Assembly (NCBI GenBank): GCA_002269645.1
Contig: NIVC01000973.1
Span: 50,444 to 114,443, forward strand
Reading direction: 5' to 3'
Source: Macrostomum lignano
Lineage: Eukaryota
Length of the DNA stretch: 64,000 nucleotides
How positions within the stretch are numbered: the stretch's first letter is position 1; every line of letters starts with the position of its first letter. Under the pieces are notes generated by a model. It saw only the letters and a list, made by a program, of their open reading frames with translations, searched no databases and had not been told where the DNA came from. Positions 779-46,212 of the stretch are shown here, piece after piece. The position numbers were made by a program, and so were the translations under genes.

Positions 779-799
779 CCGCCCCGCAGCCTGACTCAC

Positions 800-6717: not shown

Positions 6718-8660
<1,943 letters not shown>

Positions 8661-12663: not shown

Positions 12664-12718
12664 AAGACTGAAACCACAAGAACAAAATCAAAGAGTCAAG
12701 TACAGTCACAAAGAGTCA

Positions 12719-15680: not shown

Positions 15681-15737
15681 GGCTGAGTCAGAGTGCTTGG
15701 ATTCGTTGGGTGCGACAAAGTGGGTCCTGGCAGTCCG

Positions 15738-16566: not shown

Positions 16567-16572
16567 CTGTAG

Positions 16573-16590
16573 ATCCTGCTTGCGACGCCA
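16573..16590 (-). promoter_or_regulatory. Primer binding site TGGCGTCGCAAGCAGGAT
   Basis: 18 nt starting TGG, 3 nt inside the 5' LTR boundary; complementary to a tRNA 3' end ...GACGCCA (possibly tRNA-Ser, inference). Confidence 0.85.
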
Positions 16591-16593
16591 AAA

Positions 16594-16867
16594 TGTTGAA
16601 ATGAACAAGTCATGAGCTGAGAGTATGCGAGACAAGACGATAGTGCCAACAGCACCGACAACCAACGATACGATTTATTACAAGCGAGGTTCAATAGTAG
16701 CCACCCCCACCCCAGGGCTAAAACACCAAAAATGTACATTAAAATCACGATAGAGCAGAGACGTGCAAAGAGCGTAAGCCACGGACCATGAGTACACGCA
16801 CAGAGTTAAGAACACAAACAATACACGGAGTAAAAGCGCACCCCAACCCCACGCACCAGGCCCAACA
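16594..16867 (-). repeat. 5' LTR
   Basis: TG...CA, near-identical to 12389-12663. Confidence 0.95.
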
Positions 16868-16938
16868 AACCGCAAGCAAATTTTTAGTCCCAACCCATCC
16901 AAACTCTATCAGTCTAAGTACTGACGTTGAGACTCATA

Positions 16939-18146: not shown

Positions 18147-18331
18147 CTGACAGTCAGACAGGTGCGCCTGAGAGAGTGGGTTGAGATTTCAGTGATATCG
18201 ATTCAATATTTTAGTGATAATCTTAATAAATTATCTTTGAGGTGCCACGAGACCGCCCGGACGGGATGTAAACGTCATATTAATGCCGTTAAGACGCCGC
18301 TGAAACGTCATTCGGACGTCCTCAAGAGCCA

Positions 18332-21300
18332 TTAGACACCATCGAAGCTTCATTCAGACACCATCGAAGCTTCATTCAGACACCATCGAAGCCTCATTCA
18401 GACATCATCAAAGCTTCATTCAGACACCATCGAAGCTGCATTCAGACACCATCGAAGCTTCATTCAGACACCATCGAAGCTTCATTCAGACACCATCGAA
18501 GCTGCATTCAGACATCATCGAAGCTTCATTCAGACACCATCGAAGCTTCATTCAGACACCATCGAAGCTGATCATTCAGACACGATCGAAGCTTCATTCA
18601 GACACCATCGAAGCTTCATTCAAACACGATCGAAGCGTCATTCAGACACGATCGAAGCTTCATCCAGACACGGTCAAAGCTTCATTCAGACATCATCAAA
18701 GCTTCATTCAGACACCATCAAAGCTGCATTCAGACACGATCGAAGCTTCATTCAGACACCATCGAAGCTTCATTCAGACATCATAAAAGTTTCATTCAGA
18801 CACCATCGAAGCTTCATTCAGACATCATCTAAGCTTCATTCAGACATCATCGAAGCTTCATTCAGACACCATCGAAGCTTCATTCAGACACCATCGAAGC
18901 TTCATTCAGACATCATCAAAGCTTCATTCAGACACCATGGAAGCTTCATTCAGACATCATCGAAGCTTCATTCAGACATCATCAAAGCTTCATTCAGACA
19001 CGATCGAAGCTTCATTCAGACACCATCGAAGATTCATTCAGACATCATCAAAGCTTCATTCAGACACGATCGAAGCTTCATTCAGACACCATTAAAGCTT
19101 CATTCAGACACCATCGAAGCTGATCATTCAGACACGATCGAAGCTTCATTCAATTACCATCGAAGCTTCATTCAAACACCATCGAAGCTTCATTCAGACA
19201 CCATCGAAGCTTCATTCAGACATCATCGAAGCGTCATTCATACACGATCGAAGCTTCATCCAGACACGGTCGAAGCTTCATTCAGACACCATCGAAGCTT
19301 CATTCAGACACCATCAAAGCTTCATTCAGACACCATCGAAGCTTCATACAGACACCATCGAAGCTGCATTCAGACATCATCAAAGCTTCATTCAGACACC
19401 ATCGAAGCTGCATTCAGACATCATCAAAGCTTCATTCAGACACCATTGAAGCTTCATTCAGACATCATCGAAGCTTCAGTCAGACATCATCAAAGCTTCA
19501 TTCAGACACAATCAAAGCTTCATTCAGACACCATCGAAGCTTCATACAGACACCATCGAAGCTTCATTCAGACACCATCGAAGCTTCATACAGACACCAT
19601 CGAAGCTTCATTCAGACACCATCGAAGCTTCATTCAGACACCATCGAAGCTTCATTTAGACACCATCGTAGCTTCATTCAGACACCATCGAAGCTGATCA
19701 TTCAGACACCATCGAAGCTGATCATTCAGACACCATCGAAGCTTCATTCAGACACCATCGAAGCTTCATTCAGACACGATCGAAGCTGATCATTCAGACA
19801 CCATCGAAGCTGATCATTCAGACACCATCGAAGCTTCATTCAGACACCATCGAAGCTTCATTCAGACACGATCGAAGCTTCATTCAGACACCATCGAAGC
19901 TGATCATTCAGACACCATCGAAGCTGATCATTCAGACACCATCGAAGCTGATCATTCAGACACCATCGAAGCTGATCATTCAGACACGATCGAAGCTTCA
20001 TTTAGACATCATCGAAGCTTCATTCAAACACGATCAAAGCGTCATTCAGACACGATCGAAGCTTCATCCAGACACGGTCCAAGCTTCATTCAGACACCAT
20101 CGAAGCTTCATTCAGACACCATCGAAGCTGCATTCAGACATCATCGAAGCTTCATTCAGACATCATCAAAGCTTCATTCAGACACCATCGAAGCTTCATT
20201 CAGACACGATCGAAGCTTCATTCAGACACCATCGAAGCTGATCATTCAGACACCATCGAAGCTTCATTCAGACACCATCGAAGCTTCATTCAGACACCAT
20301 CGAAGCTTCATTCAGACACCATCGAAGCTGATCATTCAGACACCATCGAAGCTTCATTCAGACATCATCAAAGCTTCATTCAGACATCATCAAAGCTTCA
20401 TTCAGACACCATCGAAGCTGCATTCAGACATCATCAAAGCTTCATTCAGACACCATCGAAGCTGCATTCAGACATCATCGAAGCTTCATTCAGACATCAT
20501 CAAAGCTTTATTCCGACACCATCGAAGCTTCATTCAGACACCATCGAAGCTTCATTCAGACATCATCAAAGCTTCATTCAGACACGATCGAAGCTGCATT
20601 CAGACATCATGGAAGCTTAATTCAGACATCATCGAAGCTTCATTCAGACATCATCAAAGCTTCATTCAGACACGATCGAAGCTTCATTCAGACACCATCG
20701 AAGCTTCATTCAGACACCATCGAAGCTTCATTCAGACATCATCAAAGCTTCATTCAGACACGATCGAAGCTTCATTCAGACACCATTAAAGCTTCATTCA
20801 GACACCATCGAAGCTGATCATTCAGACACGATCGAAGCTTCATTCAATTACCATCGAAGCTTCATTCAAACACCATCGAAGCTTCATTCAGACACCATCG
20901 AAGCTTCATTCAGACATCATCGAAGCGTCATTCATACACGATCGAAGCTTCATCCAGACACGGTCGAAGCTTCATTCAGACACCATCGAAGCTTCATTCA
21001 GACACCATCAAAGCTTCATTCAGACACCATCGAAGCTTCATACAGACACCATCGAAGCTGCATTCAGACATCATCAAAGCTTCATTCAGACACCATCGAA
21101 GCTGCATTCAGACATCATCAAAGCTTCATTCAGACACCATCGAAGCTGCATTCAGACATCATCGAAGCTTCAGTCAGACATCATCAAAGTTTCATTCAGA
21201 CACCATCAAAGCTTCATTCAGACACCATCGAAGCTTCATACAGACACCATCGAAGCTTCATTCAGACACGATCGAAGCTTCATTTAGACACCATCGTAGC

Positions 21301-24300
21301 TTCATTCAGACACCATCGAAGCTGATCATTCAGACACCATCGAAGCTGATCATTCAGACACCATCGAAGCTTCATTCAGACACCATCGAAGCTTCATTCA
21401 GACACCATCGAAGCTTCATTCAGACACCATCGAAGCTTCATTCAGACACCATCGAAGCTGATCATTCAGACACCATCGAAGCTGATCATTCAGACACCAT
21501 CGAAGCTGATCATTCAGACACCATCGAAGCTGATCATTCAGACACGATCGAAGCTTCATTTAGACATCATCGAAGCTTCATTCAAACACGATCAAAGCGT
21601 CATTCAGACACGATCGAAGCTTCATCCAGACACGGTCCAAGCTTCATTCAGACACCATCGAAGCTTCATTCAGACACCATCGAAGCTTCATTCAGACACC
21701 ATCGAAGCTGATCATTCAGACACCATCGAAGCTGATCATTCAGACACCATCGAAGCTGATCATTCAGACACCATCGAAGCTGATCATTCAGACACGATCG
21801 AAGCTTCATTTAGACATCATCGAAGCTTCATTCAAACACGATCAAAGCGTCATTCAGACACGATCGAAGCTTCATCCAGACACGGTCCAAGCTTCATTCA
21901 GACATCATCAAAGCTTCATTCAGACACCATCGAAGCTGCATTCAGACATCATCGAAGCTTCATTCAGACATCATCAAAGCTTTATTCCGACACCATCGAA
22001 GCTTCATTCAGACACCATCGAAGCTTCATTCAGACATCATCAAAGCTTCATTCAGACACGATCGAAGCTGCATTCAGACATCATGGAAGCTTAATTCAGA
22101 CATCATCGAAGCTTCATTCAGACATCATCAAAGCTTCATTCAGACACGATCGAAGCTTCATTCAGACACCATCGAAGCTTCATTCAGACACCATCGAAGC
22201 TTCATTCAGACATCATCAAAGCTTCATTCAGACACGATCGAAGCTTCATTCAGACACCATTAAAGCTTCATTCAGACACCATCGAAGCTGATCATTCAGA
22301 CACGATCGAAGCTTCATTCAATTACCATCGAAGCTTCATTCAAACACCATCGAAGCTTCATTCAGACACCATCGAAGCTTCATTCAGACATCATCGAAGC
22401 GTCATTCATACACGATCGAAGCTTCATCAGACACGGTCGAAGCTTCATTCAGACACCATCGAAGCTTCATTCAGACACCATCAAAGCTTCATTCAGACAC
22501 CATCGAAGCTTCATACAGACACCATCGAAGCTGCATTCAGACATCATCAAAGCTTCATTCAGACACCATCGAAGCTGCATTCAGACATCATCAAAGCTTC
22601 ATTCAGACACCATCGAAGCTGCATTCAGACATCATCGAAGCTTCAGTCAGACATCATCAAAGTTTCATTCAGACACCATCAAGCTTCATTCAGACACCAT
22701 CGAAGCTTCATAGACACCATCGAAGCTTCATTCAGACACGATCGAAGCTTCATTTAGACACCATCGTAGCTTCATTCAGACACCATCGAAGCTGATCATT
22801 CAGACACCATCGAAGCTGATCATTCAGACACCATCGAAGCTTCATTCAGACACCATCGAAGCTTCATTCAGACACCATCGAAGCTTCATTCAGACACCAT
22901 CGAAGCTTCATTCAGACACCATCGAAGCTGATCATTCAGACACCATCGAAGCTGATCATTCAGACACCATCGAAGCTGATCATTCAGACACCATCGAAGC
23001 TGATCATTCAGACACGATCGAAGCTTCATTTAGACATCATCGAAGCTTCATTCAAACACGATCAAAGCGTCATTCAGACACGATCGAAGCTTCATCCAGA
23101 CACGGTCCAAGCTTCATTCAGACACCATCGAAGCTTCATTCAGACATCATCAAAGCTTCATTCAGACACCATCGAAGCTTCATTCAGACACCATCGAAGC
23201 TTCATTCAGACACGATCGAAGCTGATCATTCAGACACCATCGAAGCTGATCATTCAGACACCATCGAAGCTTCATTCAGACACCATCGAAGCTTCATTCA
23301 GACACGATCGAAGCTTCATTCAGACACCATCGAAGCTGATCATTCAGACACCATCGAAGCTGATCATTCAGACACCATCGAAGCTGATCATTCAGACACC
23401 ATCGAAGCTGATCATTCAGACACGATCGAAGCTTCATTTAGACATCATCGAAGCTTCATTCAACACGATCAAAGCGTCATTCAGACACGATCGAAGCTTC
23501 ATCAGACACGGTCCAAGCTTCATTCAGACACCATCGAAGCTTCATTCAGACACCATCGAAGCTGCATTCAGACATCATCGAAGCTTCATTCAGACATCAT
23601 CAAAGCTTCATTCAGACACCATCGAAGCTTCATTCAGACACGATCGAAGCTTCATTCAGACACCATCGAAGCTGATCATTCAGACACCATCGAAGCTTCA
23701 TTCAGACACCATCGAAGCTTCATTCAGACACCATCGAAGCTTCATTCAGACACCATCGAAGCTTCATTCAGACACCATCGAAGCTTCATTCAGACATCAT
23801 CAAAGCTTCATTCAGACATCATCAAGCTTCATTCAGACACCATCGAAGCTGCATTCAGACATCATCAAAGCTTCATTCAGACACCATCGAAGCTGCATTC
23901 AGACATCATCGAAGCTTCATTCAGACATCATCAAAGCTTCATTCCGACACCATCGAAGCTTCATTCAGACACCATCGAAGCTTCATTCAGACATCATCAA
24001 AGCTTCATTCAGACACGATCGAAGCTGCATTCAGACATCATGGAAGCTTATTCAGACATCATCGAAGCTTCATTCAGACATCATCAAAGCTTCATTCAGA
24101 CACGATCGAAGCTTCATTCAGACACCATCGAAGCTTCATTCAGACACCATCGAAGCTTCATTCAGACATCATCAAAGCTTCATTCAGACACGATCGAAGC
24201 TTCATTCAGACACCATTAAAGCTTCATTCAGACACCATCGAAGCTTCATTCAGACACGATCGAAGCTTCATTCAATTACCATCGAAGCTTCATTCAACAC

Positions 24301-27300
24301 CATCGAAGCTTCATTCAGACACCATCGAAGCTTCATTCAGACATCATCGAAGCGTCATTCATACACGATCGAAGCTTCATCAGACACGGTCGAAGCTTCA
24401 TTCAGACACCATCGAAGCTTCATTCAGACACCATCAAAGCTTCATTCAGACACCATCGAAGCTTCATACAGACACCATCGAAGCTGCATTCAGACATCAT
24501 CAAAGCTTCATTCAGACACCATCGAAGCTGCATTCAGACATCATCAAGCTTCATTCAGACACCATCGAAGCTGCATTCAGACACATCGAAGCTTCATTCA
24601 GACATCATCAAAGTTCATTCAGACACCATCAAAGCTTCATTCAGACACCATCGAAGCTTCATACAGACACCATCGAAGCTTCATTCAGACACGATCGAAG
24701 CTTCATTCAGACACCATCGAAGCTTCATTCAGACACCATCGAAGCTTCATTCAGACACCATCGAAGCTTCATTCAGACACCATCGAAGCTTCATTCAGAC
24801 ACCATCGAAGCTTCATTCAGACACCATCGAAGCTTCATTCAGACACCATCGAAGCTTCATTCAGACACCATCGAAGCTGATCATTCAGACACCATCGAAG
24901 CTTCATTCAGACACCATCGAAGCTTCATTCAGACACCATCGAAGCTGATCATTCAGACACGATCGAAGCTTCATTCAGACACATCGAAGCTTCATTCAGA
25001 CACGATCGAAGCTGATCATTCAGACACGATCGAAGCTTCATCCAGACACGGTCGAAGCTTCATTCAGACACCATCGAAGCTTCATTCAGACACCATCGAA
25101 GCTTCATTCAGACACCATCGAAGCTTCATTCAGACACCATCGAAGCTTCATTCAGACACGATCGAAGCTTCATTCAGACACATCGAAGCTTCATTCAGAC
25201 ACATCGAAGCTTCATTCAGACACCATCGAAGCTTCATTCAGACACCATCGAAGCTTCATTCAGACACCATCGAAGCTTCATTCAGACATCATCGAAGCTT
25301 CATTCAGACATCATCAAAGCTTCATTCAGACACCATCGAAGCTGCATTCAGACATCATCGAAGCTTCATTCAGACATCATCAAAGCTTCATTCAGACACC
25401 ATCGAAGCTGCATTCAGACACCATTAAAGCTTCATTCAGACATCATCAAAGCTTCATTCAGACACCATCGAAGCTGCATTCAGACATCATCAAAGCTTCA
25501 TTCAGACATCATCAAAGCTTCATTCAGACACCATCAAAGCTTCATTCAGACACCATCGAAGCTTCATTCAGACACCATCGAAGCTTCATTCAGACACCAT
25601 CGAAGCTTCATTCAGACATCATCGAAGCTTCATTCAGACACCATCGAAGCTTCATTCAGACATCATCAAAGCTTCATTCAGACACGATCGAAGCTTCATT
25701 CAGACACCATCGAAGCTTCATTCAGACACCATCAAAGCTTCATTCAGACACCATCGAAGCTTCATTCAGACATCATCAAAGCTTCATTCAGACACATCGA
25801 AGCTTCATTCAGACACCATCGAAGCTTCATTCAGACATCATCAAAGCTTCATTCAGACACGATCGAAGCTTCATTCAGACACCATCGAAGCTTCATTCAG
25901 ACACCATCGAAGCTTCATTCAGACACGATCGAAGCTTCATTCAACACCATCGAAGCTTCATTCAGACACCATCGAAGCTTCATTCAGACACCATCGAAGC
26001 TTCATTCAGACACATCGAAGCTTCATTCAGACACGATCGAAGCTTCATTCAGACACCATCGAAGCTTCATTCAGACACCATCGAAGCTTCATTCAGACAC
26101 CATCGAAGCTTCATTCAGACACCATCGAAGCTTCATTCAGACACCATCGAAGCTTCATTCAGACACCATCGAAGCTGATCATTCAGACACCATCGAAGCT
26201 TCATTCAGACATCATCGAAGCTTCATTCAGACACCATCGAAGCTGATCATTCAGACACCATCGAAGCTTCATTCAGACACCATCGAAGCTTCATTCAGAC
26301 ATCATCAAAGCTTCATTCAGACATCATCAAAGCTTCATTCAGACACCATCGAAGCTGCATTCAGACATCATCGAGGCTTCATTCAGACATCATCAAAGCT
26401 TCATTCAGACACCATCGAAGCTGCATTCAGACACCATTAAAGCTTCATTCAGACATCATCAAAGCTTCATTCAGACACCATCGAAGCTGCATTCAGACAT
26501 CATCAAAGCTTCATTCAGACATCATCAAAGCTTCATTCAGACACCATCAAAGCTTCATTCAGACACCATCGAAGCTTCATTCAGACACCATCGAAGCTTC
26601 ATTCAGACACCATCGAAGCTTCATTCAGACATCATCGAAGCTTCATTCAGACACCATCGAAGCTTCATTCAGACACCATCAAAGCTTCATTCAGACACCA
26701 TCGAAGCTTCATTCAGACACCATCGAAGCTTCATTCAGACACCATCAAAGCTTCATTCAGACACCATCGAAGCTTCATTCAGACATCATCAAAGCTTCAT
26801 TCAGACACGATCGAAGCTTCATTCAGACACCATCGAAGCTTCATTCAGACATCATCAAAGCTTCATTCAGACACGATCGAAGCTTCATTCAGACACCATT
26901 AAGCTTCATTCAGACATCGAAGCTTCATTCAGACACGATCGAAGCTTCATTCAGACACCATCGAAGCTTCATTCAGACATCATCGAAGCTTCATTCAGAC
27001 ACATCGAAGCTTCATTCAGACACATCGAAGCTTCATTCAGACACCATCGAAGCTTCATTCAGACACCATCGAAGCTTCATTCAGACACCATCGAAGCTTC
27101 ATTCAGACACCATCGAAGCTCATTCAGACACCATCGAAGCTTCATTCAGACACCATCGAAGCTTCATTCAGACACCATCGAAGCTTCATTCAGACACCAT
27201 CGAAGCTTCATTCAGACACCATCGAAGCTTCATTCAGACACCATCGAAGCTTCATTCAGACACATCAAAGCTTCATTCAGACACCATCGAAGCTTCATTC

Positions 27301-30300
27301 AGACACCATCGAAAGCTTCATTCAGACACCATCGAAGCTTCATTCAGACACATCGAAGCTTCATTCAGACACCATCGAAGCTTCATTCAGACACCATCGA
27401 AGCTTCATTCAGACACCATCGAAGCTTCATTCAGACACCATCGAAGCTTCATTCAGACACGATCGAAGCTTCATTCAGACACATCGAAGCTTCATTCAGA
27501 CACCATCGAAGCTTCATTCAGACACCATCGAAGCTTCATTCAGACACCATCGAAGCTTCATTCAGACACATCGAAGCTTCATTCAGACACCATCGAAGCT
27601 TCATTCAGACACCATCGAAGCTTCATTCAGACACGATCGAAGCTTCATTCAGACACGATCGAAGCTTCATTCAGACACGATCGAAGCTTCATTCAGACAC
27701 CATCGAAGCTGCATTCAGACATCATCGAAGCTTCATTCAGACATCATCAAAGCTTCATTCAGACATCAAAGCTTCATTCAGACACCATCGAAGCTTCATT
27801 CAGACACCATCGAAGCTGATCATTCAGACACGATCGAAGCTTCATTCAGACACCATCGAAGCTTCATTCAAACACGATCGAAGCGTCATTCAGACACGAT
27901 CGAAGCTTCATCCAGACACGGTCGAAGCTTCATTCAGACATCATCAAAGCTTCATTCAGACACCATCGAAGCTTCATTCAGACATCATCGAAGCTTCATT
28001 CAGACACCATCGAAGCTTCATTCAGACACATCGAAGCTGATCATTCAGACACCATCGAAGCTTCATTCAGACACCATCGAAGCTTCATTCAGACACCATC
28101 GAAGCTTCATTCAGACACCATCGAAGCTGCATTCAGACACGATCGAAGCTTCATTCAGACACCATCGAAGCTTCATTCAGACACGATCGAAGCTTCATTC
28201 AGACACCATCGAAGCTTCATTCAGACACATCGAAGCTTCATTCAGACACGATCGAAGCTTCATTCAGACACCATCGAAGCTTCATTCAGACACCATCGAA
28301 GCTTCATTCAGACACATCGAAGCTTCATTCAGACACATCGAAGCTTCATTCAGACACATCGAAGCTTCATTCAGACACGATCGAAGCTTCATTCAGACAC
28401 CATCGAAGCTTCATTCAGACACCATCGAAGCTTCATTCAGACACCATCGAAGCTTCATTCAGACACCATCGAAGCTTCATTCAGACACGATCGAAGCTTC
28501 ATTCAGACACCATCGAAGCTTCATTCAGACACCATCGAAGCTTCATTCAGACACGATCGAAGCTTCATTCAGACACCATCGAAGCTTCATTCAACACGAT
28601 CGAAGCTTCATTCAGACACGATCGAAGCTTCATTCAGACACCATCGAAGCTTCATTCAGACACATCAAAGCTTCATTCAGACACCATCGAAGCTTCATTC
28701 AGACATCATCGAAGCTTCATTCAGACACCATCGAAGCTTCATTCAGACATCATCGAAGCTTCATTCAGACACGATCAAGCTTCATTCAGACACATCGAAG
28801 CTGATCATTCAGACACCATCGAAGCTTCATTCAGACACCATCGAAGCTTCATTCAGACACCATCGAAGCTTCATTCAGACACCATCGAAGCTTCATTCAG
28901 ACACATCGAAGCTTCATTCAGACACATCGAAGCTTCATTCAGACACGATCGAAGCTTCATTCAGACACCATCGAAGCTTCATTCAGACACATCGAAGCTG
29001 CATTCAGACACGATCGAAGCTTCATTCAGACACCATCGAAGCTTCATTCAGACACCATCGAAGCTTCATTCAGACATCATCGAAGCTTCATTCAGACACC
29101 ATCGAAGCTGATCATTCAGACACCATCGAAGCTTCATTCAGACATCATCGAAGCTTCATTCAGACACGATCGAAGCTTCATTCAGACACCATCGAAGCTT
29201 CATTCAGACACCATCGAAGCTTCATTCAGACACCATCGAAGCTTCATTCAGACACCATCAAAGCTTCATTCAGACACCATCGAAGCTTCATTCAGACATC
29301 ATCAAAGCTTCATTCAGACACGATCGAAGCTTCATTCAGACACCATTAAAGCTTCATTCAGACACCATCGAAGCTGATCATTCAGACACGATCGAAGCTT
29401 CATTCAATTACCATCGAAGCTTCATTCAGACACCATCGAAGCTTCATTCAGACACCATCGAAGCTTCATTCAGACATCATCGAAGCTTCATTCAGACACG
29501 ATCGAAGCTTCATTCAGACACATCGAAGCTTCATTCAGACACCATCGAAGCTTCATTCAGACACCATCGAAGCTTCATTCAGACACCATCGAAGCTTCAT
29601 TCAGACATCATCGAAGCTTCATTCAGACACCATCGAAGCTTCATTCAGACACCATCGAAGCTTCATTCAGACACCATCGAAGCTTCATTCAGACACGATC
29701 GAAGCTTCATTCAGACACGATCGAAGCTTCATTCAGACACGATCGAAGCTTCATTCAGACACCATCGAAGCTGCATTCAGACATCATCGAAGCTTCATTC
29801 AGACATCATCAAAGCTTCATTCAGACATCAAAGCTTCATTCAGACACCATCGAAGCTTCATTCAGACACCATCGAAGCTTCATTCAGACACCATCGAAGC
29901 TTCATTCAGACACATCGAAGCTTCATTCAACACGATCGAAGCGTCATTCAGACACGATCGAAGCTTCATCCAGACACGGTCGAAGCTTCATTCAGACATC
30001 ATCAAAGCTTCATTCAGACACCATCGAAGCTTCATTCAGACATCATCGAAGCTGCATTTAGACACGATCAAAGCTTCATTCAGACAGCATTGAAGCTGAT
30101 CATTCAGACACCATCGAAGCTTCATTCAGACACCATCGAAGCTTCATTCAGACACCATCGAAGCTTCATTCAGACACCATCGAAGCTGCATTCAGACACG
30201 ATCGAAGCTTCATTCAGACACGATCGAAGCTTCATTCAGACACGATCGAAGCTTCATTCAGACACCATCGAAGCTTCATTCAGACAGCATTGAAGCTGCA

Positions 30301-31957
30301 TTCAGACACGATCGAAGCTTCATTCAGACACCATCGAAGCTTCATTCAGACACCATCGAAGCTTCATTCAGACATCATCGAAGCTGCATTCAGACACGAT
30401 CGAAGCTTCATTCAGACACGATCAAAGCTTCATTCAGACACGATCGAAGCTTCATTCAGACACCATCGAAGCTTCATTCAGACACCATCGAAGCTTCATT
30501 CAGACACCATCGAAGCTTCATTCAGACACCATCGAAGCTGCATTCAGACACGATCGAAGCTTCATTCAGACACCATCGAAGCTTCATTCAGACACCATCG
30601 AAGCTGATCATTCAGACACGATCGAAGCTTCATTCAGACACCATCGAAGCTTCATTCAAACACGATCGAAGCGTCATTCAGACACGATCGAAGCTTCATC
30701 CAGACACGGTCGAAGCTTCATTCAGACATCATCAAAGCTTCATTCAGACACCATCGAAGCTTCATTCAGACATCATCAAAGCTTCATTCAGACACCATCG
30801 AAGCTTCATTCAGACATCATCGAAGCTGCATTTAGACACGATCAAAGCTTCATTCAGACAGCATTGAAGCTGATCATTCAGACACCATCGAAGCTTCATT
30901 CAGACACCATCGAAGCTTCATTCAGACACCATCGAAGCTTCATTCAGACACCATCGAAGCTGCATTCAGACACGATCGAAGCTTCATTCAGACACGATCG
31001 AAGCTTCATTCAGACACGATCGAAGCTTCATTCAGACACCATCGAAGCTTCATTCAGACAGCATTGAAGCTGCATTCAGACACGATCGAAGCTTCATTCA
31101 GACACCATCGAAGCTTCATTCAGACACCATCGAAGCTTCATTCAGACATCATCGAAGCTGCATTCAGACACGATCGAAGCTTCATTCAGACACGATCGAA
31201 GCTTCATTCAGACACGATCGAAGCTTCATTCGGACACCATCGAAGCTTCATTCAGACACCATCGAAGCTTCATTCAGACACCATCGAAGCTTCATTCAGA
31301 CACGATCGAAGCTGCATTCAGACACGATCGAAGCTTCATTCAGACACCATCGAAGCTTCATTCAGACACCATCGAAGCTTCATTCAGACACGATCGAAGC
31401 TTCATTCAGACACGATCGAAGCTTCATTCAGACAGCATTGAAGCTGATCATTCAGACACCATCGAAGCTTCATTCAAAAACCATCGAAGCTTCATTCAGA
31501 CACCATCGAAGCTTCATTCAGACATCATCGAAGCTGCATTCAGACACGATCGAAGCTTCATTCAGACACGATCGAAGCTTCATTCAGACACGATCGAAGC
31601 TTCATTCAGACACGATCGAAGCTTCATTCAGACACGATCGAAGCTTCATTCAGACACCATCGAAGCTTCATTCAGACACCATCGAAGCTTCATTCAGACA
31701 CGATCGAAGCTTCATTCAGACAGCATTGAAGCTGATCATTCAGACACCATCGAAGCTGCATTCAGACACCATCGAAGCTTCATTCAGACACCATCGAAGC
31801 TTCATTCATTCACCATCAAAGCTTCATTCATTCACCATCAAAGCTTCATTCATTCACCATCGAAGCTTCATTCAGACACCATCGAAGCTTCATTCAGACA
31901 CCATCGAAGCTTCATTCAGACACGATCGAAACTTCATTCAGACATCATTTAAACACC
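18332..31957. repeat. 13.6-kb 22-bp satellite (CAGACACCATCGAAGCTTCATT)n, ~620 copies, inside the last DEG/ENaC intron
   Basis: Directly visible; the unit contains the palindrome GAAGCTTC (HindIII site); recurrent variant units define higher-order blocks. Confidence 0.98.
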
Positions 31958-32249
31958 ATTAAATAAGCTCAGAACACAGACAGTAGACATATGACATCCA
32001 TTTTTGTATCGAACTATTTTCTCCAATACAGTTTTGAAAGATTATGTTAAGCCGTTCAAATAAACGCGACTCGCAATGCCAAAACCGGAATCCTCGACAA
32101 CGCCGCTCTAATTATGCAGCTTGGCTAAAGTAAAGTTCCCGGATATTACATTTGTGTTTCAAATTCTGCTGTTGAGACAGAGCGGGATCTGTGAGCAGCT
32201 GTGTTTAAAGCAAAGATATACTAAAGCGACCATGCGTATGCAGACAGAC

Positions 32250-32367
32250 CTGAAATGAGGCGGGCTTCAACTGGCGATTCGAAATGACCAGGTACTCCAG
32301 CTGCTTGTGGCTCGAATCGTCAAGACACGGCGATTGCTTTGTACTTTTGGCGTCGAATTCTTGGTAC
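32250..32367 (-). CDS. DEG/ENaC exon 4, copy A (118 nt)
   Basis: CAG|G TAC CAA...TTT CAG|GTCTG; encodes (R)YQEFDAKSTKQSPCLDDSSHKQLEYLVISNRQLKPASFQ; phase 2->0 bridges exon 3 to exon 5. Confidence 0.8.
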
Positions 32368-32465
32368 CTGTGCGCACGGTTTGGCCCGTGTTTATGGGGC
32401 AAGATGTTCAGAGCCAGGTTATTGGCGATTCTATGAAATTCAATTGTCTGCACAGGAGTTCGGCA

Positions 32466-33164
32466 GGGAGATTCCAACCCACCCCATCGGGAGATTCCAA
32501 CCCACCCCATCGGGAGATTCCAATCCACCCCATCGGGAGATTCCAATCCATTCCATCGGGAGATTCCAACCCACCCCATCGGGAGATTCCAATCCACTCC
32601 ATTGGGAGACTCCAATCCACTCCATTGGGAGACTCCAATCAACTCCATTGAGAGATTCCAATCAACTCTATTGGGAGATTCCAATCAACTCTATTGGGAG
32701 ATTCCAATCAACTCTATTGGGAGATTCCAATCAACTCTATTGGGAGATTCCAATCAACTCTATTGGGAGATTCCAATCCACCCCATCGGGAGATTCCAAT
32801 CCACTCCATTGGGAGACTCCAATCAACTCCATTGAGAGATTCCAATCAACTCTATTGGGAGATTCCAATCAACTCTATTAGGAGATTCCAATCAACTCTA
32901 TTGGGAGATTCCAATCAACTCTATTGGGAGACTCCAATCGACTCCATTGAGAGATTCCAATCAACTCTATTGGGAGATTCCAATCAACTCTATTGGGAGA
33001 TTCCAATCAACTCCATTGAGAGATTCCAATCAACTCTATTGGGAGACTCCAATCCACTCCATTGGGAGACTCCAATCCACTCCATTGGGAGACTCCAATC
33101 CACTCCATTGGGAGACTCCAATCGACTCCATTGAGAGATTCCAATCAACTCTATTGGGAGATTC
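32466..33164. repeat. 23-bp minisatellite (GGGAGATTCCAATCAACTCTATT)n, block 1
   Basis: Directly visible. Confidence 0.95.
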
Positions 33165-33629
33165 CATTCAGACACGATCGAAGCTTCATTCAGACAGCAT
33201 TGAAGCTGATCATTCAGACACCATCGAAGCTTCATTCAAAAACCATCGAAGCTTCATTCAGACACCATCGAAGCTTCATTCAGACATCATCGAAGCTGCA
33301 TTCAGACACGATCGAAGCTTCATTCAGACAGCATTGAAGCTGCATTCAGACACGATCGAAGCTTCATTCAGACACCATCGAAGCTTCATTCAGACACCAT
33401 CGAAGCTTCATTCAGACATCATCGAAGCTGCATTCAGACACCATCGAAGCTTCATTCAGACACCATCGAAGCTTCATTCATTCACCATCAAAGCTTCATT
33501 CATTCACCATCAAAGCTTCATTCATTCACCATCGAAGCTTCATTCAGACACCATCGAAGCTTCATTCAGACACCATCGAAGCTTCATTCAGACACGATCG
33601 AAACTTCATTCAGACATCATTTAAACACC
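33165..33629. repeat. Duplicated terminal part of the 22-bp satellite
   Basis: Carries the same rare variants (CAGACAGCATTGAAG, TTCAAAAACC, CATTCACCATCAAAG) as 31430-31957. Confidence 0.92.
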
Positions 33630-33921
33630 ATTAAATAAGCTCAGAACACAGACAGTAGACATATGACATCCATTTTTGTATCGAACTATTTTCTCCAATA
33701 CAGTTTTGAAAGATTCTGTTAAGCCGTTCAAATAAACGCGACTCGCAATGCCAAAACCGGAATCCTCGACAACGCCGCTCTAATTATGCAGCTTGGCTAA
33801 AGTAAAGTTCCCGGATATTACATTTGTGTTTCAAATTCTGCTGTTGAGACAGAGCGGGATCTGTGAGCAGCTGTGTTTAAAGCAAAGATATACTAAAGCG
33901 ACCATGCGTATGCAGACAGAC

Positions 33922-34039
33922 CTGAAATGAGGCGGGCTTCAACTGGCGATTCGAAATGACCAGGTACTCCAGCTGCTTGTGGCTCGAATCGTCAAGACAC
34001 GGCGATTGCTTTGTACTTTTGGCGTCGAATTCTTGGTAC
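33922..34039 (-). CDS. DEG/ENaC exon 4, copy B (118 nt, identical to copy A)
   Basis: Exact copy at offset 1672 bp, with intact AG and GT sites. Confidence 0.8.
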
Positions 34040-34137
34040 CTGTGCGCACGGTTTGGCCCGTGTTTATGGGGCAAGATGTTCAGAGCCAGGTTATTGGCGA
34101 TTCTATGAAATTCAATTGTCTGCACAGGAGTTCGGCA

Positions 34138-34830
34138 GGGAGATTCCAACCCACCCCATCGGGAGATTCCAACCCACCCCATCGGGAGATTCCAATCCAC
34201 CCCATCGGGAGATTCCAATCCATTCCATCGGGAGATTCCAACCCACCCCATCGGGAGATTCCAATCCACTCCATTGGGAGACTCCAATCCACTCCATTGG
34301 GAGACTCCAATCAACTCCATTGAGAGATTCCAATCAACTCTATTGGGAGATTCCAATCAACTCTATTGGGAGATTCCAATCAACTCTATTGGGAGATTCC
34401 AATCAACTCTATTGGGAGATTCCAATCAACTCTATTGGGAGATTCCAATCCACCCCATCGGGAGATTCCAATCCACTCCATTGGGAGACTCCAATCAACT
34501 CCATTGAGAGATTCCAATCAACTCTATTGGGAGACTCCAATCCACTCCATTGGGAGACTCCAATCCACTCCATTGGGAGACTCCAATCCACTCCATTGGG
34601 AGACTCCAATCGACTCCATTGAGAGATTCCAATCAACTCTATTGGGAGATTCCAATCAACTCTATTGGGAGATTCCAATCAACTCTATTGGGAGATTCCA
34701 ATCAACTCTATTGGGAGATTCCAATCAACTCTATTGGGAGATTCCAATCAACTCTATTGGGAGATTCCAATCAACTCCATTGGGAGATTCCAATTCACTC
34801 CATTGGGAGATTATAATCAACTCCATTGAG
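34138..34830. repeat. 23-bp minisatellite, block 2
   Basis: Directly visible. Confidence 0.95.
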
Positions 34831-35011
34831 AGTTCCCACTTATTTCGAGGAAGTTGAACAGTAAACTTCCTATCTCGCCAATGTTTAATGGAACAATTTT
34901 TGAGCAATTTTAATGTCCATCTGCTTTATAGCTGCCCGGGAGCCAAGCCTGCAGACCCCGGGGTTGCTTTTGCCCTACCCCGATGGAACAAAAGTCAGTG
35001 CAGCTCAGTAC

Positions 35012-35423
35012 CGAATGTCCACAATGGTCTCCTCTCCGTTGCTGGCCTCGATGCGGTTTCCGTGGGTCGGGTAGGTGCCCTGCGGGTGCACGTAGACCAC
35101 GGCGCCGCCGCTGCCCTGCATGTTGAACCAGTCGCCGGGCAGGTTGGTCAGGCCGGTAGTGACGCCCGGATCGCCGTTGAAGGAGTCGGTGAAGACAACC
35201 AGTCGGAGCTCGTTCAGCTCATTCACGGTGACGTTTGGCCGTCGGGCGCGGAACCGGGCAAGGCTGAAGGTCATGCAGGCCGGGCTGGCGGGCAGGGCGG
35301 CCGGCAGGAAGTCGGACTGGTCGCAGGCCAGCATGCCGTAGGCGCACCAGAGAAGCATGGAGGCCGGGCTGGCGCTGAACTGAGCCAGCATGAAGATGCC
35401 GTAGGTGTCACGGATCACCAGGT
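35012..35423 (-). CDS. DEG/ENaC exon 3 (palm/beta-ball)
   Basis: MLLWCAYGMLACDQSDF..ACMTF..ELRLVVF..GAVVYVHPQGTYP..GEETIVDIR; CCAG| acceptor at 35424 and |GTACTG donor at 35011; 412 nt, phase 1->2. Confidence 0.88.
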
Positions 35424-38213: not shown

Positions 38214-38353
38214 TGGGCAGGTTGTAGACACCGTCGTCCTCAGCCCTGAGCGTGTCCGTGTCCAGCTCGTAGTCTCCATATCTGTCGCGCAGGTACCGTC
38301 GGACGCTTCCATTCAGAATCTGCCTCACCTTCTGCACGCTCTCGTACACCGGC
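38214..38353 (-). CDS. DEG/ENaC exon 2 (finger region)
   Basis: CCCCAG|G CCG GTG TAC ... CTG CCC A|GTGAGC; 140 nt, phase 2->1, matching both neighbours. Confidence 0.82.
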
Positions 38354-38443
38354 CTGGGGATTTCAGTTGGGATTAAATTAGTGCTCTTTATTTGATGCAA
38401 GCTCTAGAGAAGGGACAGCCGGTTGATTAGAATGCCCTACACC

Positions 38444-39160
38444 AGGTCAATTAGAATGCCCTACACCGGGTGATTCGGGATGTCTTACACCGGGTGATTC
38501 GGGATGTCTTACACCGGGTCATTCGGATGTCCTACACCGGGTGATTCGGGATGTCTTACACCGGGTGATTCGGGATGTCTTACACCGGGTGATTCGGGAT
38601 GTCTTACACCGGGTCATTCGGGATGTCTTACACCGGGTCATTCGGATGTCCTACACCGGGTCATTCGGATGTCCTACACCGGGTCATTCGGGATGTCTTA
38701 CACCGGGTGATTCGGGATGTCTTACACCGGGTCATTCGGATGTCCTACACCGGGTCATTCGGGATGTCTTACACCGGGTCATTCGGATGTCCTACACCGG
38801 GTCATTTGGGATGTCTTACACCGGGTCATTCGGGATGTCCTACATCGGGTCATTCGGGATGTCCTACATCGGGTCATTTGGGATGTCCTACACCGGGTCA
38901 TTCGGGATGTCCTACACCGGGTCATTCGGGATGTCCTACATCGGGTCATTCGGGATGTCTTACACCGGGTCATTCAGGATGTCTTACACCGGGTCATTCG
39001 GGATGTCCTACACCGGGTCATTCAGGATGTCTTACACCGGGACATTCGGGATGTCTTACACCGGGTCATTCGGGATGTCCTACACCGGGTCATTTGGGAT
39101 GTCCTACACCGGGTCATTTGGGATGTCCTACACCGGGTCATTCGGGATCACGGATACCGG
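38444..39160. repeat. 24-bp (22/24 variant) minisatellite (ACCGGGTCATTCGGGATGTCCTAC)n, DEG/ENaC intron 1
   Basis: Directly visible. Confidence 0.95.
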
Positions 39161-39207
39161 GTCTAAATTCGGAGACAAGTGAGTCTAATCTCAATCCTCA
39201 GACAGAC

Positions 39208-39716
39208 CTGAATCTGTTGCTGATTTCAACTCGGCCATCGCCGCTGTCGTTGAACACTCGGCTGATGGCGAACATCATCCGGTTGCAGACGGTGATGTCA
39301 GGGGCGATGTAGCGGCCGCCCTTCGGATTGATCTTAGTGGTGATGGGCTGGTCGCGAAACTTCACCGCCAGCAGGGACAGGTGCACGGTGAAAGCGACAA
39401 GAGCGGCCGAGATCAGCGTCAACCAGGCGATCTGGACGGCTCGCAGCGGATGGTTCAGGTGGCGGAACCCGTGCGCCGTGGTGCTCCCGGCGAACAACCG
39501 AAAGGTGCTGACCACGCTGGTGGATGCGGACACAGAACTCCTGTCGGGGTTGGAGCAGTTGGTTGAACTTGAAATTGAATCAGGGATATGGCTAGGGTTG
39601 GGGTTAGGAACATTGTTCTGCATGCTGAATGAAGAAACATTCAAGCTGACTGAGGCGGTGTTCCCATTCGAAGGTCGATTGGGCGCCTTTGCCGGCCCTG
39701 TTTCCGTTTGTTTCAT
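39208..39716 (-). CDS. DEG/ENaC exon 1 (N-terminus, HG motif, TM1)
   Basis: FAGSTTAHGFRHL (conserved HG), TM1 IAWLTLISAALVAFTVHLSLL, PDITVCN; donor TTC AG|GTCTGT at 39207. The five exons sum to 1974 nt = 657 aa + stop. Start Met (39716) inferred. Confidence 0.9.
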
Positions 39717-43295: not shown

Positions 43296-43637
43296 TCAGG
43301 CAAAGCTGCTGCTGGCTGCTTTGCTTCGAGCAGAAGTTGGCGCCGCTGATGTCGATCCAGTCTTGCTGGACTTGGCGTCCTCGTAGGTATCCTCTTCGCT
43401 GTCGCCGTCGCTGCCACTGCCGCTGCCGCTGTCGCTGCTGCCGTCCTCCTCATCATCCTCTTCGTCTTCATCTTCGATTTCCTCAATTGGTGCTTTTTTG
43501 ATCATGCCGATCTTGCGGCCGAGCCACTGGAACTTGGCCTGTATCTCGTCCTGGATAAGGTTGATGCACATTGACAGCATGGCCAAGCCGAACAGGCAGT
43601 AGATGCAGCCAACCAGGAGCTCTGTGATCACCTGTAT
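43296..43637 (-). CDS. Two-pore-domain K+ channel (K2P/TWiK), exon 4 (TM4, acidic C-tail)
   Basis: TTACAG|ATA CAG GTG; IYCLFGLAMLSMCINLIQ; stop at 43298-43296. Confidence 0.9.
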   Translation of the reverse strand: MQVITELLVGCIYCLFGLAMLSMCINLIQDEIQAKFQWLGRKIGMIKKAPIEEIEDEDEEDDEEDGSSDSGSGSGSDGDSEEDTYEDAKSSKTGSTSAAPTSARSKAASSSFA

Positions 43638-43756
43638 CTGTAAGGGTTGGGGGGAGGATTTGTCTGTTAGCTGACCACAGCACTTGATGACCCAGCATGG
43701 ACAGCTAAAGTCCAAGGACGCTGCTCTCGAAGCTAGTAAGCGTTTCGTTCAAGGTG

Positions 43757-43977
43757 CACTCACAGGTTTTGTCGGAAAAGTTTGAAAAAAAGCTATGTCC
43801 CAATATTGCAGAGCGTGTTTTCTAGACCGATTTCGCAATGATTTGCCGTTTTGCACAGCTCTGAGTGGGGTTTGGCCATAGACAAATCCGTCCAGAAAAA
43901 AACTTTGCCGCAACTTTGCTTGCCTGTCGGTCTCCGGCAGCAGTTCATGAAAAAACAGCTTGGCAAACCTGTGAGAC
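43757..43977. mobile_element. Dispersed non-autonomous DNA-transposon-like repeat, copy 2 (K2P intron 3)
   Basis: TIR-like CTCACAGGTTT...AAACCTGTGAG; internal homology to 9932-10180. Confidence 0.7.
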
Positions 43978-43997
43978 TTGCAACATTATTGGCTTAC

Positions 43998-44237
43998 ATC
44001 ATTAAATGGCCCGTCACGGCCGGGCACGTAGTCTCCGAATCCGATAGTGCTCAGCGTGATGAATGAGAAATAGGTGCCCTCAACCAGAGTCCACTCCTTC
44101 TCCCACACCATGAACACGGCAGCTCCCATCAGGATGTACAGAATGAGCAGTATGATGGTCACCGTGATGGGGATGTTCACCACATCGTCTTCTTCGTTCT
44201 CTTCTTCCTCTTCAACATCGTCCTCGATGACGGTCAC
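43998..44237 (-). CDS. K2P channel exon 3 (TM3, pore 2)
   Basis: YFSFITLSTIGFGDYVPG; CTCAG| acceptor and |GTAAGC donor; 240 nt. Confidence 0.95.
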
Positions 44238-44482
44238 CTGAGATTTTAATTCAGTTTTAAAGGTGTAAATTCATCAGTGCTACGGCATCTGAGTGAATAG
44301 TTAGCAGTCGCCCACCCCTGGGCATAGTTCGTACTCAGGCACACACAGGTGTACTTGACTGACTGGCCCTGACTTTCTAATCTTCAGGCCTTCATGGGTG
44401 GGAAACCTGAGGACTTCGGTGAGTGAGTCTGTCCTCCCTCCAAATGAGTTGGCGGTGTGACTAAGTAAAAAAAATCAATCAC

Positions 44483-44763
44483 CTTTGCCGGTGGCCGCTT
44501 GCCATCGCCCTCTTCCACCTGCTGCCAGCTGGTCTGCGCGTTGCCGCCGTTCTCCTGCATCGCCTCCATCAGCTTGTTCTCGTTGGGCAGCTTCTTAACA
44601 AAGCACTTGCAGCAGAAGATATTGAGATAAAAACTGCGAAATAGCATTGCGGTTGGTTCGCCGATCTTTGACAAGAACAGCAGCATGAGCGGGATGCCCA
44701 GAATTGAGTAGATCATGCACACAATCTGGCCCCACTGCGTGACCGGACTGATGTGACCGTATC
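44483..44763 (-). CDS. K2P channel exon 2 (pore 1 GYG, TM2)
   Basis: G|GA TAC GGT completes TIGYG; ISPVTQWGQIVCMIYSILGIPLMLLFLSKIG; donor AAG|GTGATT. Confidence 0.93.
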
Positions 44764-44939
44764 CTGGGGGAGGGGGGTTGGTGATCAACCAGTTTGACAC
44801 AAACGAGCCGTAGCCAGGCGATTTAAGGCGCTATTTAGTGCTGAGCTATCCCTTTGTTTATCTGATGCACCTTCTTAACACTAATAACTATGTCTCTCTC
44901 ATCATCCTTTGGTGCTTCAATATTATTTTAGCCACTCTA

Positions 44940-45420
44940 CTTTGCGATACTGTCACTCTCCTATTTGCAGTACTGTCACTCTCCTCTTTGCGATACTGTC
45001 ACTCTTCTATTTGCGGTACTGTCACTCTCCTTTTTGCGGTACTGTCCCTCTCCTATTTGCGGTACTGCTGTCACTCTCCTATTTGCGGTACTGTCACTCT
45101 CCTATTTGCGGTACTGTCACTCTCCTATTTGCGGTACTGTCACTCTTCTATTTGCGGTACTGTCACTCTCCTCTTTGCGGTACTGTCCCTCTCCTATTTG
45201 CGGTACTGCTGTCACTCTCCTATTTGCGGTACTGTCACTCTCCTATTTGCGGTACTGTCCCTCTCCTATTTGCGGTACTGCTGTCACTCTCCTATTTGCG
45301 GTACTGTCACTCTCCTATTTGCGGTACTGTCACTCTCCTATTTACGTACTGTCACCCTCATCTTTGCGGTACTGTCACTCTCCTATTTGCGATATCCTAT
45401 TTGTGGAACTGTCACTCATT
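44940..45420. repeat. 23-bp minisatellite (GCGGTACTGTCACTCTCCTATTT)n, K2P intron 1
   Basis: Directly visible. Confidence 0.93.
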
Positions 45421-45543
45421 CTCTGCCCTTAGCTCTTCCTCTGTCATACTGAACTGATACAAGAACTCTCCTGACGGTATTACCATAACATATTAACATT
45501 TCGCATTCTTCCCAGGTCCACGTCGACACTGGCTGTCACTCAC

Positions 45544-46135
45544 CAATCGTGGTAATGATGGTGACGCAGAAGTACGCCGCGTTGGCCACATTCCAGCTAG
45601 GCATGCTCTCTCCCGTCTTCAGAGTAGTGCAGTTCATAGACGGATCCACCCCCAGGGTGTACGTGTCCTGCGCGAACTGGTTCAACTCTTCCTGAATGGC
45701 TGACTTGGCTTGAGTAGCGTTGGTGCCCTGCGCTATGTTGTAGATTTGGTCAACCGACTCGTCCAGTTTGGCAATGAACTTTTCAGACTTGGTCTGGCAG
45801 CCCGAGATCTCGTTCTCGACCTCCAAGTATTGGAACAGGAAGCCGCCCATGAGGGTGTAGAGCACCACAATGAGAAATGTGCCCAGGTGGGACAGCATTA
45901 TGGAAGAGAAGCGCTTCATGCACCGGTTCATCTTGCTCTTCTTCTGCTGCTGCTGCTCTTCGTCTTCCTCTTGGACTTCCAGTTCCGGCTTCTTGCCGGC
46001 CGGTTCGAAGCCGCCAAATTCGCCGTTTAGCGCCGTGGTGCGGAAGCCACCGTCGCGCCTGACATCGAAGCCGGCCGACGTCTTACCGCCGAACTCGCCG
46101 AAGGTGTCAGCCTCGAAGCCGCTGTTTGAGTACAT
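45544..46135 (-). CDS. K2P channel exon 1 (TM1, cap, pore helix 1)
   Basis: HLGTFLIVVLYTLMGGFLFQYLE, WNVANAAYFCVTIITTIG|GTGAGT. The four exons sum to 1455 nt = 484 aa + stop. Confidence 0.93.
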
Positions 46136-46212
46136 CTCGTGGCGGAGCTGCACAAGAAGAGCGAGTGGTGAAGCAATGTTGATTTTGCAATTTTGCTCTT
46201 TTGCTGTTCTTT

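Follow-up and report, generated by a model that had tools for sequence, protein, structure and literature searches.

The fourth exon of a gene for a DEG/ENaC channel is present twice, head to tail, in the 64-kb stretch of Macrostomum lignano DNA analysed here (the window). The two copies are identical 118-mers, lying on the same strand and in the same phase, with intact splice sites, and messages that carry both of them, or neither, run into a premature stop. We lean, by somewhat better than an even chance, to the view that this is a real and very recent head-to-tail duplication of ~1.5-1.8 kb, and that the allele is a hypomorph or a null.

The host gene is on the minus strand and has five exons, with a predicted product of 664 aa when one exon-4 copy is spliced in. 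Residues 75-636 of the predicted protein match the Pfam ASC family (PF00858) over the full profile (positions 1-455 of 455; E = 6.7e-34). The hallmarks of DEG/ENaC chains are all present: an N-terminal HG motif (TTAHGF, residues 79-84) followed by a hydrophobic TM1, a second transmembrane helix (TM2, aa 604-649) that aligns with TM2 of FaNaC/ASIC chains, and within TM2 the G-x-S motif (GGILGLYMGVSVLT), encoded by exon 5. A protein search returned two M. lignano proteins (50-53% identity) as the closest relatives and no others. As far as can be judged from its sequence, the channel gene is real and intact.

In the gene model, exon 1 (39208-39716) supplies the start codon, the HG motif and TM1. 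Exons 2 (38214-38353) and 3 (35012-35423) are placed by the model together with alignment to the homologues; exon 3 ends in phase 2 with ...GACATTCG/gtactg, its donor being CG/GTACTG. Exon 4, which runs from phase 2 to phase 0, comes next in two copies: copy 2 (33922-34039) is the first in the transcript and copy 1 (32250-32367) the second. Exon 5 (17352-18167) is the last coding exon and contains the distal extracellular domain, TM2 and the stop codon. Its acceptor, ctctctcag/GCGCAC, leads into AHLSDC, which aligns with AQLADC of the M. lignano homologues. Intron 4 (18168-32249) is 14,082 nt long, and 97% of it is a 22-bp minisatellite (18330-31948) with a higher-order period of ~35 units. 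Indeed, in this channel gene, as in its M. lignano homologue, every intron is filled with a minisatellite private to it. A search of the literature for M. lignano minisatellites yielded no relevant papers.

The minisatellites also delimit the duplication. Tandem Repeats Finder (TRF) finds two stretches of each array: 18330-31948 and 33165-33620 for the 22-bp unit, 32466-33170 and 34138-34836 for a 23-bp unit. Between the two members of each alternation lies a unique spacer carrying exon 4. By BLAST and global alignment, 31405-33166 pairs with 33167-34836. The first duplication copy (31405-33166; 3′ in the transcript) is 1762 bp long and consists of 544 bp of the 22-bp array, 517 bp of spacer and 701 bp of the 23-bp array. 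The second copy (33167-34654; 5′ in the transcript) is 1488 bp long, with 454, 517 and 517 bp in the same order, its 23-bp array being counted as far as the position that corresponds to the junction. The eight further 23-bp units that follow (34655-34836; HHHHHKMN in the unit-variant strings) are single-copy right flank and lie outside the duplication. The initial annotation had described a ~1.67-kb unit present twice. The duplication itself stands, but the copies are unequal, and 1672 bp is the period from exon to exon rather than the length of a unit.

Each of the unique spacers (31949-32465 and 33621-34137) measures 517 bp, not 508 bp as first reported, and the two are 99.8% identical. As had been noticed at the outset, they differ by a single intronic base, A at 32044 against C at 33716 (GATTATGTT/GATTCTGTT), which falls 206 nt past the donor of exon 4. 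When the two copies are compared in register, this amounts to 1 mismatch in 1378 bp, and the remaining differences between them are rearrangements of whole units within the arrays. The order of unit variants is otherwise shared: in the 23-bp array both copies run AABCADEFGHHHHBDFG...EEEJG, and in the 22-bp array both run ABCDCEA...CCGGHCCIJ. The match of the 517-bp spacers, together with the same order of private units on both sides, excludes chance as the source of the resemblance.

The 22-bp blocks differ by whole units, and a comparison at a fixed offset of 1672 bp therefore misses the left end of the duplication, which was located with gapped alignment and with strings of unit variants. 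Within the window, the unit variants D (TTCAAAAACC), G/H (ATTCATTCACC) and I are confined to the two duplicated blocks, and hence the left breakpoint at 31405 is not an ambiguity of the alignment. The middle part of the 22-bp blocks, which reads AAAACCABF in one and LACCE in the other, differs by more than a simple indel. The string LACCE also occurs in the main 22-bp array, at 30279 and 31053. The difference could reflect exchange with the main array after the duplication, or a patchwork in the consensus of long reads.

A single novel junction, GGGAGATTCCA/TTCAGACAC, lies at 33166/33167, where a truncated 23-bp unit is joined to a 22-bp unit (GGGAGATTCCA/TTCAGACACGATCG over 33156-33188; to the right of the join the sequence reads TTCAGAC). 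The fusion had been recognized as novel in the initial annotation but put at ~33164, 2 nt off. Its position follows from the junction 16-mer GGGAGATTCCATTCAG, which occurs once in the window, at 33156. Two further elements of the original description, breakpoints inside two different satellites (the 22-bp and 23-bp arrays) and ~2 nt of microhomology, agree with what we find: the dinucleotide CA is common to both units, and there are no filler bases and no Ns. The 23-bp array of the first copy ends in mid-unit, exactly where that of the second copy carries on, and such a cut is expected from one non-homologous join. The arrangement (head-to-tail copies, one junction, CA alone shared and no long homology) is that of a microhomology-mediated tandem duplication.

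The following course of events may account for these features. A break or a replication template switch would have connected one point in each of two minisatellites, the 23-bp one in intron 3 and the 22-bp one in intron 4. With 2 nt of microhomology only at the join, the event would be of the NHEJ or the MMBIR/FoSTeS type. What lay between the two points, exon 4 with 98 nt of upstream and 301 nt of downstream intron, would thereby have been duplicated. Afterwards the arrays would have gained and lost whole units, and one point substitution would have arisen. Homologous unequal crossing-over does not accord with a 2-nt junction as the origin of the duplication. Homeologous recombination between the satellites was also considered and rejected: when the 22-bp and 23-bp units are aligned cyclically, the best solution is in register at the junction, but 11 of 200 shuffles score equally, and the register is a hint only.

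So described, the duplication is a known and ordinary kind of event. Pathogenic intragenic exon duplications with microhomology junctions are familiar in humans, for example those of DMD exons and the partial tandem duplication of KMT2A. Like the flatworm case, they are head-to-tail and intragenic, have breakpoints in intronic repeats with zero to a few nt of microhomology, and shift the frame. The flatworm breakpoints differ in that they lie in two private minisatellites, rather than in Alu/LINE or unique sequence.

An indication of age comes from an LTR pair in the same window, whose members differ by 4 mismatches and 1 indel in 276 bp. Set against 1 mismatch in 1378 bp, this makes the exon duplication the younger of the two, and it would have occurred at roughly one-twentieth of the age of the LTR-pair insertion.

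As adjacent homologous exons of one gene, on the same strand and equal in length and phase, the two copies of exon 4 constitute a tandem exon duplication. The acceptor (gcgcacag/GTACC) and the donor (TTTCAG/gtctgt) are the same in both, as the initial annotation had also concluded. The donor, CAG/GTCTGTCTG, matches that of intron 1, and the acceptor has a poor pyrimidine tract (aacacgggccaaaccgtgcgcacag). The intron between the copies is 1554 nt long, and both introns are GT-AG. The unduplicated state is seen in relatives: the exon-4 peptide aligns once, ungapped, to two M. lignano homologues (P0001 and P0002), and the genomic locus L001 is single-copy, the segment there not being a separate exon. 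A 32-nt piece of exon 4 had no exact match in metagenome contigs.

The number of exon-4 copies in the message decides the product. One copy gives the full-length channel ORF. Since 118 nt is not a multiple of three, messages with no copy or with two copies acquire premature stops. Without exon 4 the frame shifts and ends after 361 aa. With both copies the reading is ...FQVPRIRRQKYKAIAVS followed by a stop at codon 409, that is, a 408-aa chain that lacks TM2; this stop ends after 48 nt of the second copy, which leaves 70 nt to the last exon junction (E4/E5). The reading first proposed, VPRIRRQKYKAIAVS followed by a stop, with exon 4 of 118 nt (phase 2 to 0) and truncation before TM2, is borne out. 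The default transcript would be E3-E4-E4-E5, because both copies are complete exon units with an identical branch-site region, acceptor and donor, and because the second acceptor comes 1.55 kb past the first donor, whereas from the second copy it is another 14 kb to the acceptor of exon 5. The two-copy message would be a target of NMD or, failing that, would be translated into the 408-aa protein with TM1 and without TM2. To yield a functional channel, a transcript would have to skip one copy of exon 4 and retain the other. The weak exon-4 acceptor could make such skipping frequent, leaving the allele nearer to neutral than is assumed here.

Four functional options had been left side by side at the start: a mutually exclusive exon pair, an NMD-coupled dosage switch, a null allele and an assembly artefact. 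Of these, the null (or hypomorphic) allele fits best, since the two exon units do not differ, either in themselves or in their splicing signals. The exclusive pair applies in a trivial sense only, the NMD switch is unsupported and the artefact is disfavoured. Probably, then, this is an allele of one DEG/ENaC paralogue that is tolerated, whether polymorphic or fixed by drift, and not an evolved regulatory device.

The reading that comes closest in explaining the same observations, although we consider it unlikely, is that the duplication is real and amounts to a tolerated forerunner of a mutually exclusive pair. Owing to the weak pyrimidine tract of the acceptor, one copy would often be used alone, NMD would clear the other messages, output would stay near normal, and the spare copy would be free to diverge later. 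Letunic et al., in 2002, are said to have recognized tandem exon duplication as a source of mutually exclusive exons. It is an accepted origin of such exons (Kondrashov and Koonin, 2001, as cited in PMC6071210), and exclusive exons arising in this way have been reviewed (PMC6071210; PMC5740500). The flatworm copies resemble established pairs in being adjacent and in the same orientation, with equal length, phase and splice sites and a co-duplicated intron between them. Established pairs, however, have diverged and yield two isoforms, whereas here, with exons that are 100% identical, the locus stands at most at time zero of that process; protein diversity is not increased, and selection has no isoform difference on which to act.

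It is also instructive to ask what would keep the copies apart in splicing. An intervening intron of 1554 nt poses no steric block, and GT-AG borders on both introns leave no U2/U12 incompatibility. The second exon-4 acceptor is transcribed ~14 kb before that of exon 5, which favours double inclusion. Incompatibility of frame is the sole exclusivity mechanism that is apparent. Exclusivity enforced by frame and NMD is exemplified by FGFR2 IIIb/IIIc (Jones et al., 2001, as cited in PMC6071210), where exon length is likewise not divisible by 3 and double inclusion and skipping both give premature stops, as they do in the flatworm messages, for which NMD is predicted. FGFR2, however, has tissue-specific regulators and diverged exons, and nothing comparable is visible at the flatworm locus.

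Competing RNA structures offer another route, known from clusters with docking and selector sequences, and a model exists in which duplication creates them (PMC6071210). Co-duplication of the flanking intron, the precondition of that model, is found here, but docking-site complementarity does not rise above shuffled controls. RNAduplex was used to pair the spacer with the unique stretch of intron 3 (34837-35011) and with that of intron 4 (18168-18329). The energies, -88.1 and -71.3 kcal/mol, lie at the means for shuffles (-87.5 +/- 6.8 and -71.0 +/- 4.8 kcal/mol), in a crude test that drew on the introns of this one gene. A scan for inverted repeats had as its sole match a 9-nt core against a common 22-bp unit variant. 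The bolder proposal, that exactly one copy per transcript is already achieved through weak-acceptor skipping and NMD clean-up, so that the locus would be a snapshot of the birth of exclusive exons, is very doubtful. Were it true, exclusivity would precede divergence of sequence, and the first Kondrashov-Koonin step would be directly observable.

The second copy might, alternatively, exist on no chromosome and be the product of a chimeric read or of misjoined haplotypes in a repeat-rich long-read assembly, which we regard as rather improbable. The setting invites such concern, as genomes of Macrostomum are difficult to assemble. Simple and tandem repeats make up 15% of the M. lignano genome, and its assembly is substantially redundant (PMC5730564); assemblies of M. 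cliftonense and M. hystrix were made from pooled worms, and separately assembled haplotypes had to be purged from them (PMC10468722). One SNP and whole-unit differences in arrays are, moreover, what two alleles would also show. The junction itself speaks against an artefact. Overlap assemblers join in shared sequence and scaffolders add gaps, but this junction shares 2 nt and contains no Ns, and the arrays that it joins are at most marginally similar by the shuffling result given above. Neither a gap, nor a contig end, nor a join in a shared repeat, the hallmarks of false duplication, lies between the copies. For a ligation chimera, two fragments lying 1.7 kb apart at one locus would have had to join in matching orientation, which is very improbable. 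Finally, self-BLAST of the 64-kb window found no other non-satellite duplication besides the LTR pair. A scan of the whole window at Rfam gathering thresholds gave no match.

An evolved AS-NMD switch, in which regulated inclusion of the second copy tunes the level of channel mRNA, is extremely improbable: a stop that precedes the last exon junction by 70 nt, more than the 50 nt required, does give the known geometry of a poison exon, but a duplication with so few differences is too young to be conserved, neither M. lignano homologue repeats the exon-4 segment (at L001 it is not even an exon of its own), and the copies have no difference in cis except the one base 206 nt into the intron.

If the duplication is real, it provides a clean and datable case of intronic minisatellites supplying the breakpoints for structural change at the level of an exon, and shows tandem exon duplication at essentially zero divergence. 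It is also a trap for annotation, as a predictor that uses both copies of exon 4 would report the channel as truncated or the gene as a pseudogene. For the biology of the flatworm, it probably means just that one gene out of a large channel family has an allele that is damaged or weakened, and by itself it opens no long-standing question. The private minisatellites that extend through the introns may merit more attention than the exon duplication.

The ion channel of the initial annotation is, judging from its sequence, a DEG/ENaC channel. The five-exon gene model spans 17.3-39.7 kb on the minus strand of the window (E1, 39208-39716; E2, 38214-38353; E3, 35012-35423; E4, 118 nt, in two copies at 32250-32367 and 33922-34039; E5, which contains TM2, 17352-18167). 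Single use of exon 4 gives a 664-aa protein that matches the whole of the Pfam ASC profile (PF00858; E = 6.7e-34). It carries the HG motif and TM1, and its TM2, with G-x-S, aligns to TM2 in FaNaC and ASIC structures. A collection of 5.8 billion proteins contains only two relatives of it, both from Macrostomum lignano and 50-53% identical.

The exon-4 peptide, YQEFDAKSTKQSPCLDDSSHKQLEYLVISNRQLKPASFQ, matches both M. lignano homologues once, with ungapped ends and the conserved Cys included. At L001, the M. lignano locus of one homologue (P0002), the exon-4 equivalent is continuous with the exon-5 equivalent. On these comparisons the segment is coding and single-copy in relatives, and exon 4 is a real, constitutive exon. 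By frame arithmetic, one exon-4 copy gives the full ORF, none gives a stop after 361 aa, and two give a 408-aa product ending ...PASFQ-VPRIRRQKYKAIAVS and a stop, which bears out the proposed truncation before TM2. The two-copy stop ends 48 nt inside the second copy, 70 nt ahead of the last exon junction. The channel therefore requires exactly one copy.

The window is animal DNA in which minisatellites are dense (43 TRF rows). The 22-bp array at 18330-31948 recurs at 33165-33620, the 23-bp array at 32466-33170 recurs at 34138-34836, and a gapped alignment matches 31405-33166 (copy 1, second in the transcript) to the sequence from 33167 onward (copy 2). All elements of the tandem duplication first described are thus present. 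The unique spacers (31949-32465 and 33621-34137) differ, as claimed, by a single base, A at 32044 vs. C at 33716, and measure 517 bp each rather than 508. The exon-4 copies are identical and, as had been noted, have intact splice sites, with the same acceptor (gcgcacag/GTACC) and donor (TTTCAG/gtctgt). The join, earlier placed at about 33164, is refined to between 33166 and 33167 by a 16-mer, GGGAGATTCCATTCAG, that occurs once in the window; CA is assignable to either unit, confirming the 2-nt microhomology. No filler or long shared homology is found at this junction.

We coded each array unit by a variant letter and compared the strings between copies. The 23-bp array reads AABCADEFGHHHHBDFG[HIHJGHKG]EEEJG up to the junction in copy 1, and AABCADEFGHHHHBDFG-EEEJG-HHHHHKMN in copy 2: copy 1 has an additional 8-unit block and is severed mid-unit, whereas the same unit in copy 2 runs on for eight units to unique sequence. 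The 22-bp block reads ABCDCEA[AAAACCABF]CCGGHCCIJ in copy 1 and ABCDCEA[LACCE]CCGGHCCIJ in copy 2. Units D, G, H and I are not found elsewhere in the 13.6-kb 22-bp array, which fixes the left breakpoint firmly at 31405. Such a pattern marks a single non-homologous join, which duplicated 31405 to the middle of the 23-bp array and was followed by whole-unit array changes. The 13.6-kb array (18330-31948) also repeats at a higher order, with a period of about 35 units: the string CE.BCCCFAAACLACCEA repeats about 770 bp apart, and the LACCE block of copy 2 is present at 30279 and 31053.

In-register sequence totalling 1378 bp (156 + 188 + 517 + 517) has one mismatch between copies, and the LTRs of a retrotransposon (12389-12665 vs. 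16594-16869) differ at 4/276 positions plus one indel. The duplication is therefore about twenty-fold younger than the LTR insertion, with a wide error since it rests on a single event. The element itself (12389-16869, minus strand) has 277-bp LTRs (272/276 identical with one indel) and gag/protease/RT/integrase-like ORF pieces at 12719-16665, the pol region being broken into several ORFs.

Each intron of the gene (18168-39207) is 72-97% filled by a private minisatellite of 24-, 25-, 23- or 22-bp units, and the arrays reach very near splice sites. The 25-bp array stops 11 nt short of the exon-3 acceptor, so that the pyrimidine tract and CAG form part of a degenerate repeat unit. In the M. lignano homologue (L001, 4496-8630), the introns are likewise packed with unrelated 20-bp, 30-bp, 22/44-bp and (ACCA)n arrays, one beginning 6 nt past a donor. 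Introns 1 (38354-39207) and 4 (18168-32249) have no counterpart in the P0002 gene: tblastn HSPs cross both positions uninterrupted (L001, 3983-4495 and 6997-7323), so one lineage has either gained or lost them. The donors of the two introns have 14 bases in common, TTCAG/GTCTGTCTG, a sequence that resembles the window's many (GTCT)n/(AGAC)n microsatellites. Compared with its position in L001 (about 6169/6999), the pre-exon-4 intron of the window (35012/34039) is displaced 7 nt to the 5′ side; it is phase 2 in the window, inside an Arg codon (CG/G TAC CAA), and phase 0 in the homologue, after Tyr-Gln (TAT CAG/GTG TAC). Its position may have shifted or the intron may have arisen independently.

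Elsewhere in the window, two 27-bp arrays (6251-6681 and 7640-8379) are inverted reverse complements separated by about 1 kb, and a (CAGAG)38 run lies between them at 6724-6912. For the neighbouring genes, ORF translations suggest a two-pore-domain K+ channel-like gene at 43296-46153 (minus; TIGFGD/TIGYG-type pore motifs), with 9-, 23- and 32-bp arrays in its introns, and a rhodopsin-type GPCR-like exon with a DRY motif at 773-1486 (minus). Between ORF-rich stretches lies an array (51748-54674; 2.9 kb) of the A-rich 20-bp unit TAAAAAGCCAATCAAGTGGA, with 97% matches, and past 60 kb the GC content falls to 25-32%.

Both exon-4 copies are flanked by the same stretches of intron, 98 nt upstream (with the branch-site region and the acceptor) and 301 nt downstream, the sole cis difference being one base 206 nt beyond the donor. 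The intron between them is 1554 nt and GT-AG; hence steric hindrance or spliceosome incompatibility cannot block their joining. The second-copy acceptor is transcribed about 14 kb ahead of that of exon 5. No excess complementarity to the single-copy flanks of the introns, of the kind a docking/selector system would use (modeled in PMC6071210), was found for the duplicated unit. The spacer downstream of exon 4 (32114-32131) and variant E of the 22-bp repeat (33284-33301 and 33416-33433) share a short inverted match with the core ATGCAGCTT/AAGCTGCAT, probably by chance. The default product would be double inclusion, leading to a premature stop and then to NMD or a TM2-less fragment, which would make the allele a hypomorph or null. 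We lean, with some reserve, toward a genuine, microhomology-mediated duplication of the exon in tandem, very recent and most likely harmful to this copy of the gene.

Mutually exclusive exons have their textbook origin in tandem exon duplication, and frame incompatibility with NMD is a recognized route to enforcing exclusivity (PMC6071210; PMC5740500). The initial annotation's reading holds in part: the locus has the structure of a tandem exon duplication but lacks the diverged alternatives that define a mutually exclusive pair. That the copies form a tolerated proto-mutually-exclusive pair is unlikely; we retain the idea because the weak pyrimidine tract of the exon-4 acceptor permits some single inclusion. 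Somewhat less probable still is an assembly artefact. The genus Macrostomum is known for difficult assemblies, which are repeat-rich and redundant (PMC5730564) and in some cases made from pooled worms with residual haplotypes (PMC10468722). However, assemblers join via shared sequence and scaffolders insert Ns, whereas this join runs base-to-base from one array into an unrelated one, and a ligation chimera would have to unite two fragments of one locus that lie 1.7 kb apart and point the same way, which is very improbable.

The duplication probably originated when end-joining or a replication template switch connected two fragile intronic arrays. The best cyclic alignment of the 22-bp and 23-bp units sets the junction in register, which 11 of 200 shuffles equal; the units are similar marginally at most. 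A junction with 2 nt of microhomology and neither filler nor extended homology does not fit homologous unequal crossing-over.

In human disease genes, intragenic exon duplications that shift the frame and have microhomology junctions are known, and this class is the closest functional analogue of the locus. The locus is a further instance of a known event, the small twist being that each breakpoint falls within a private minisatellite of an intron.
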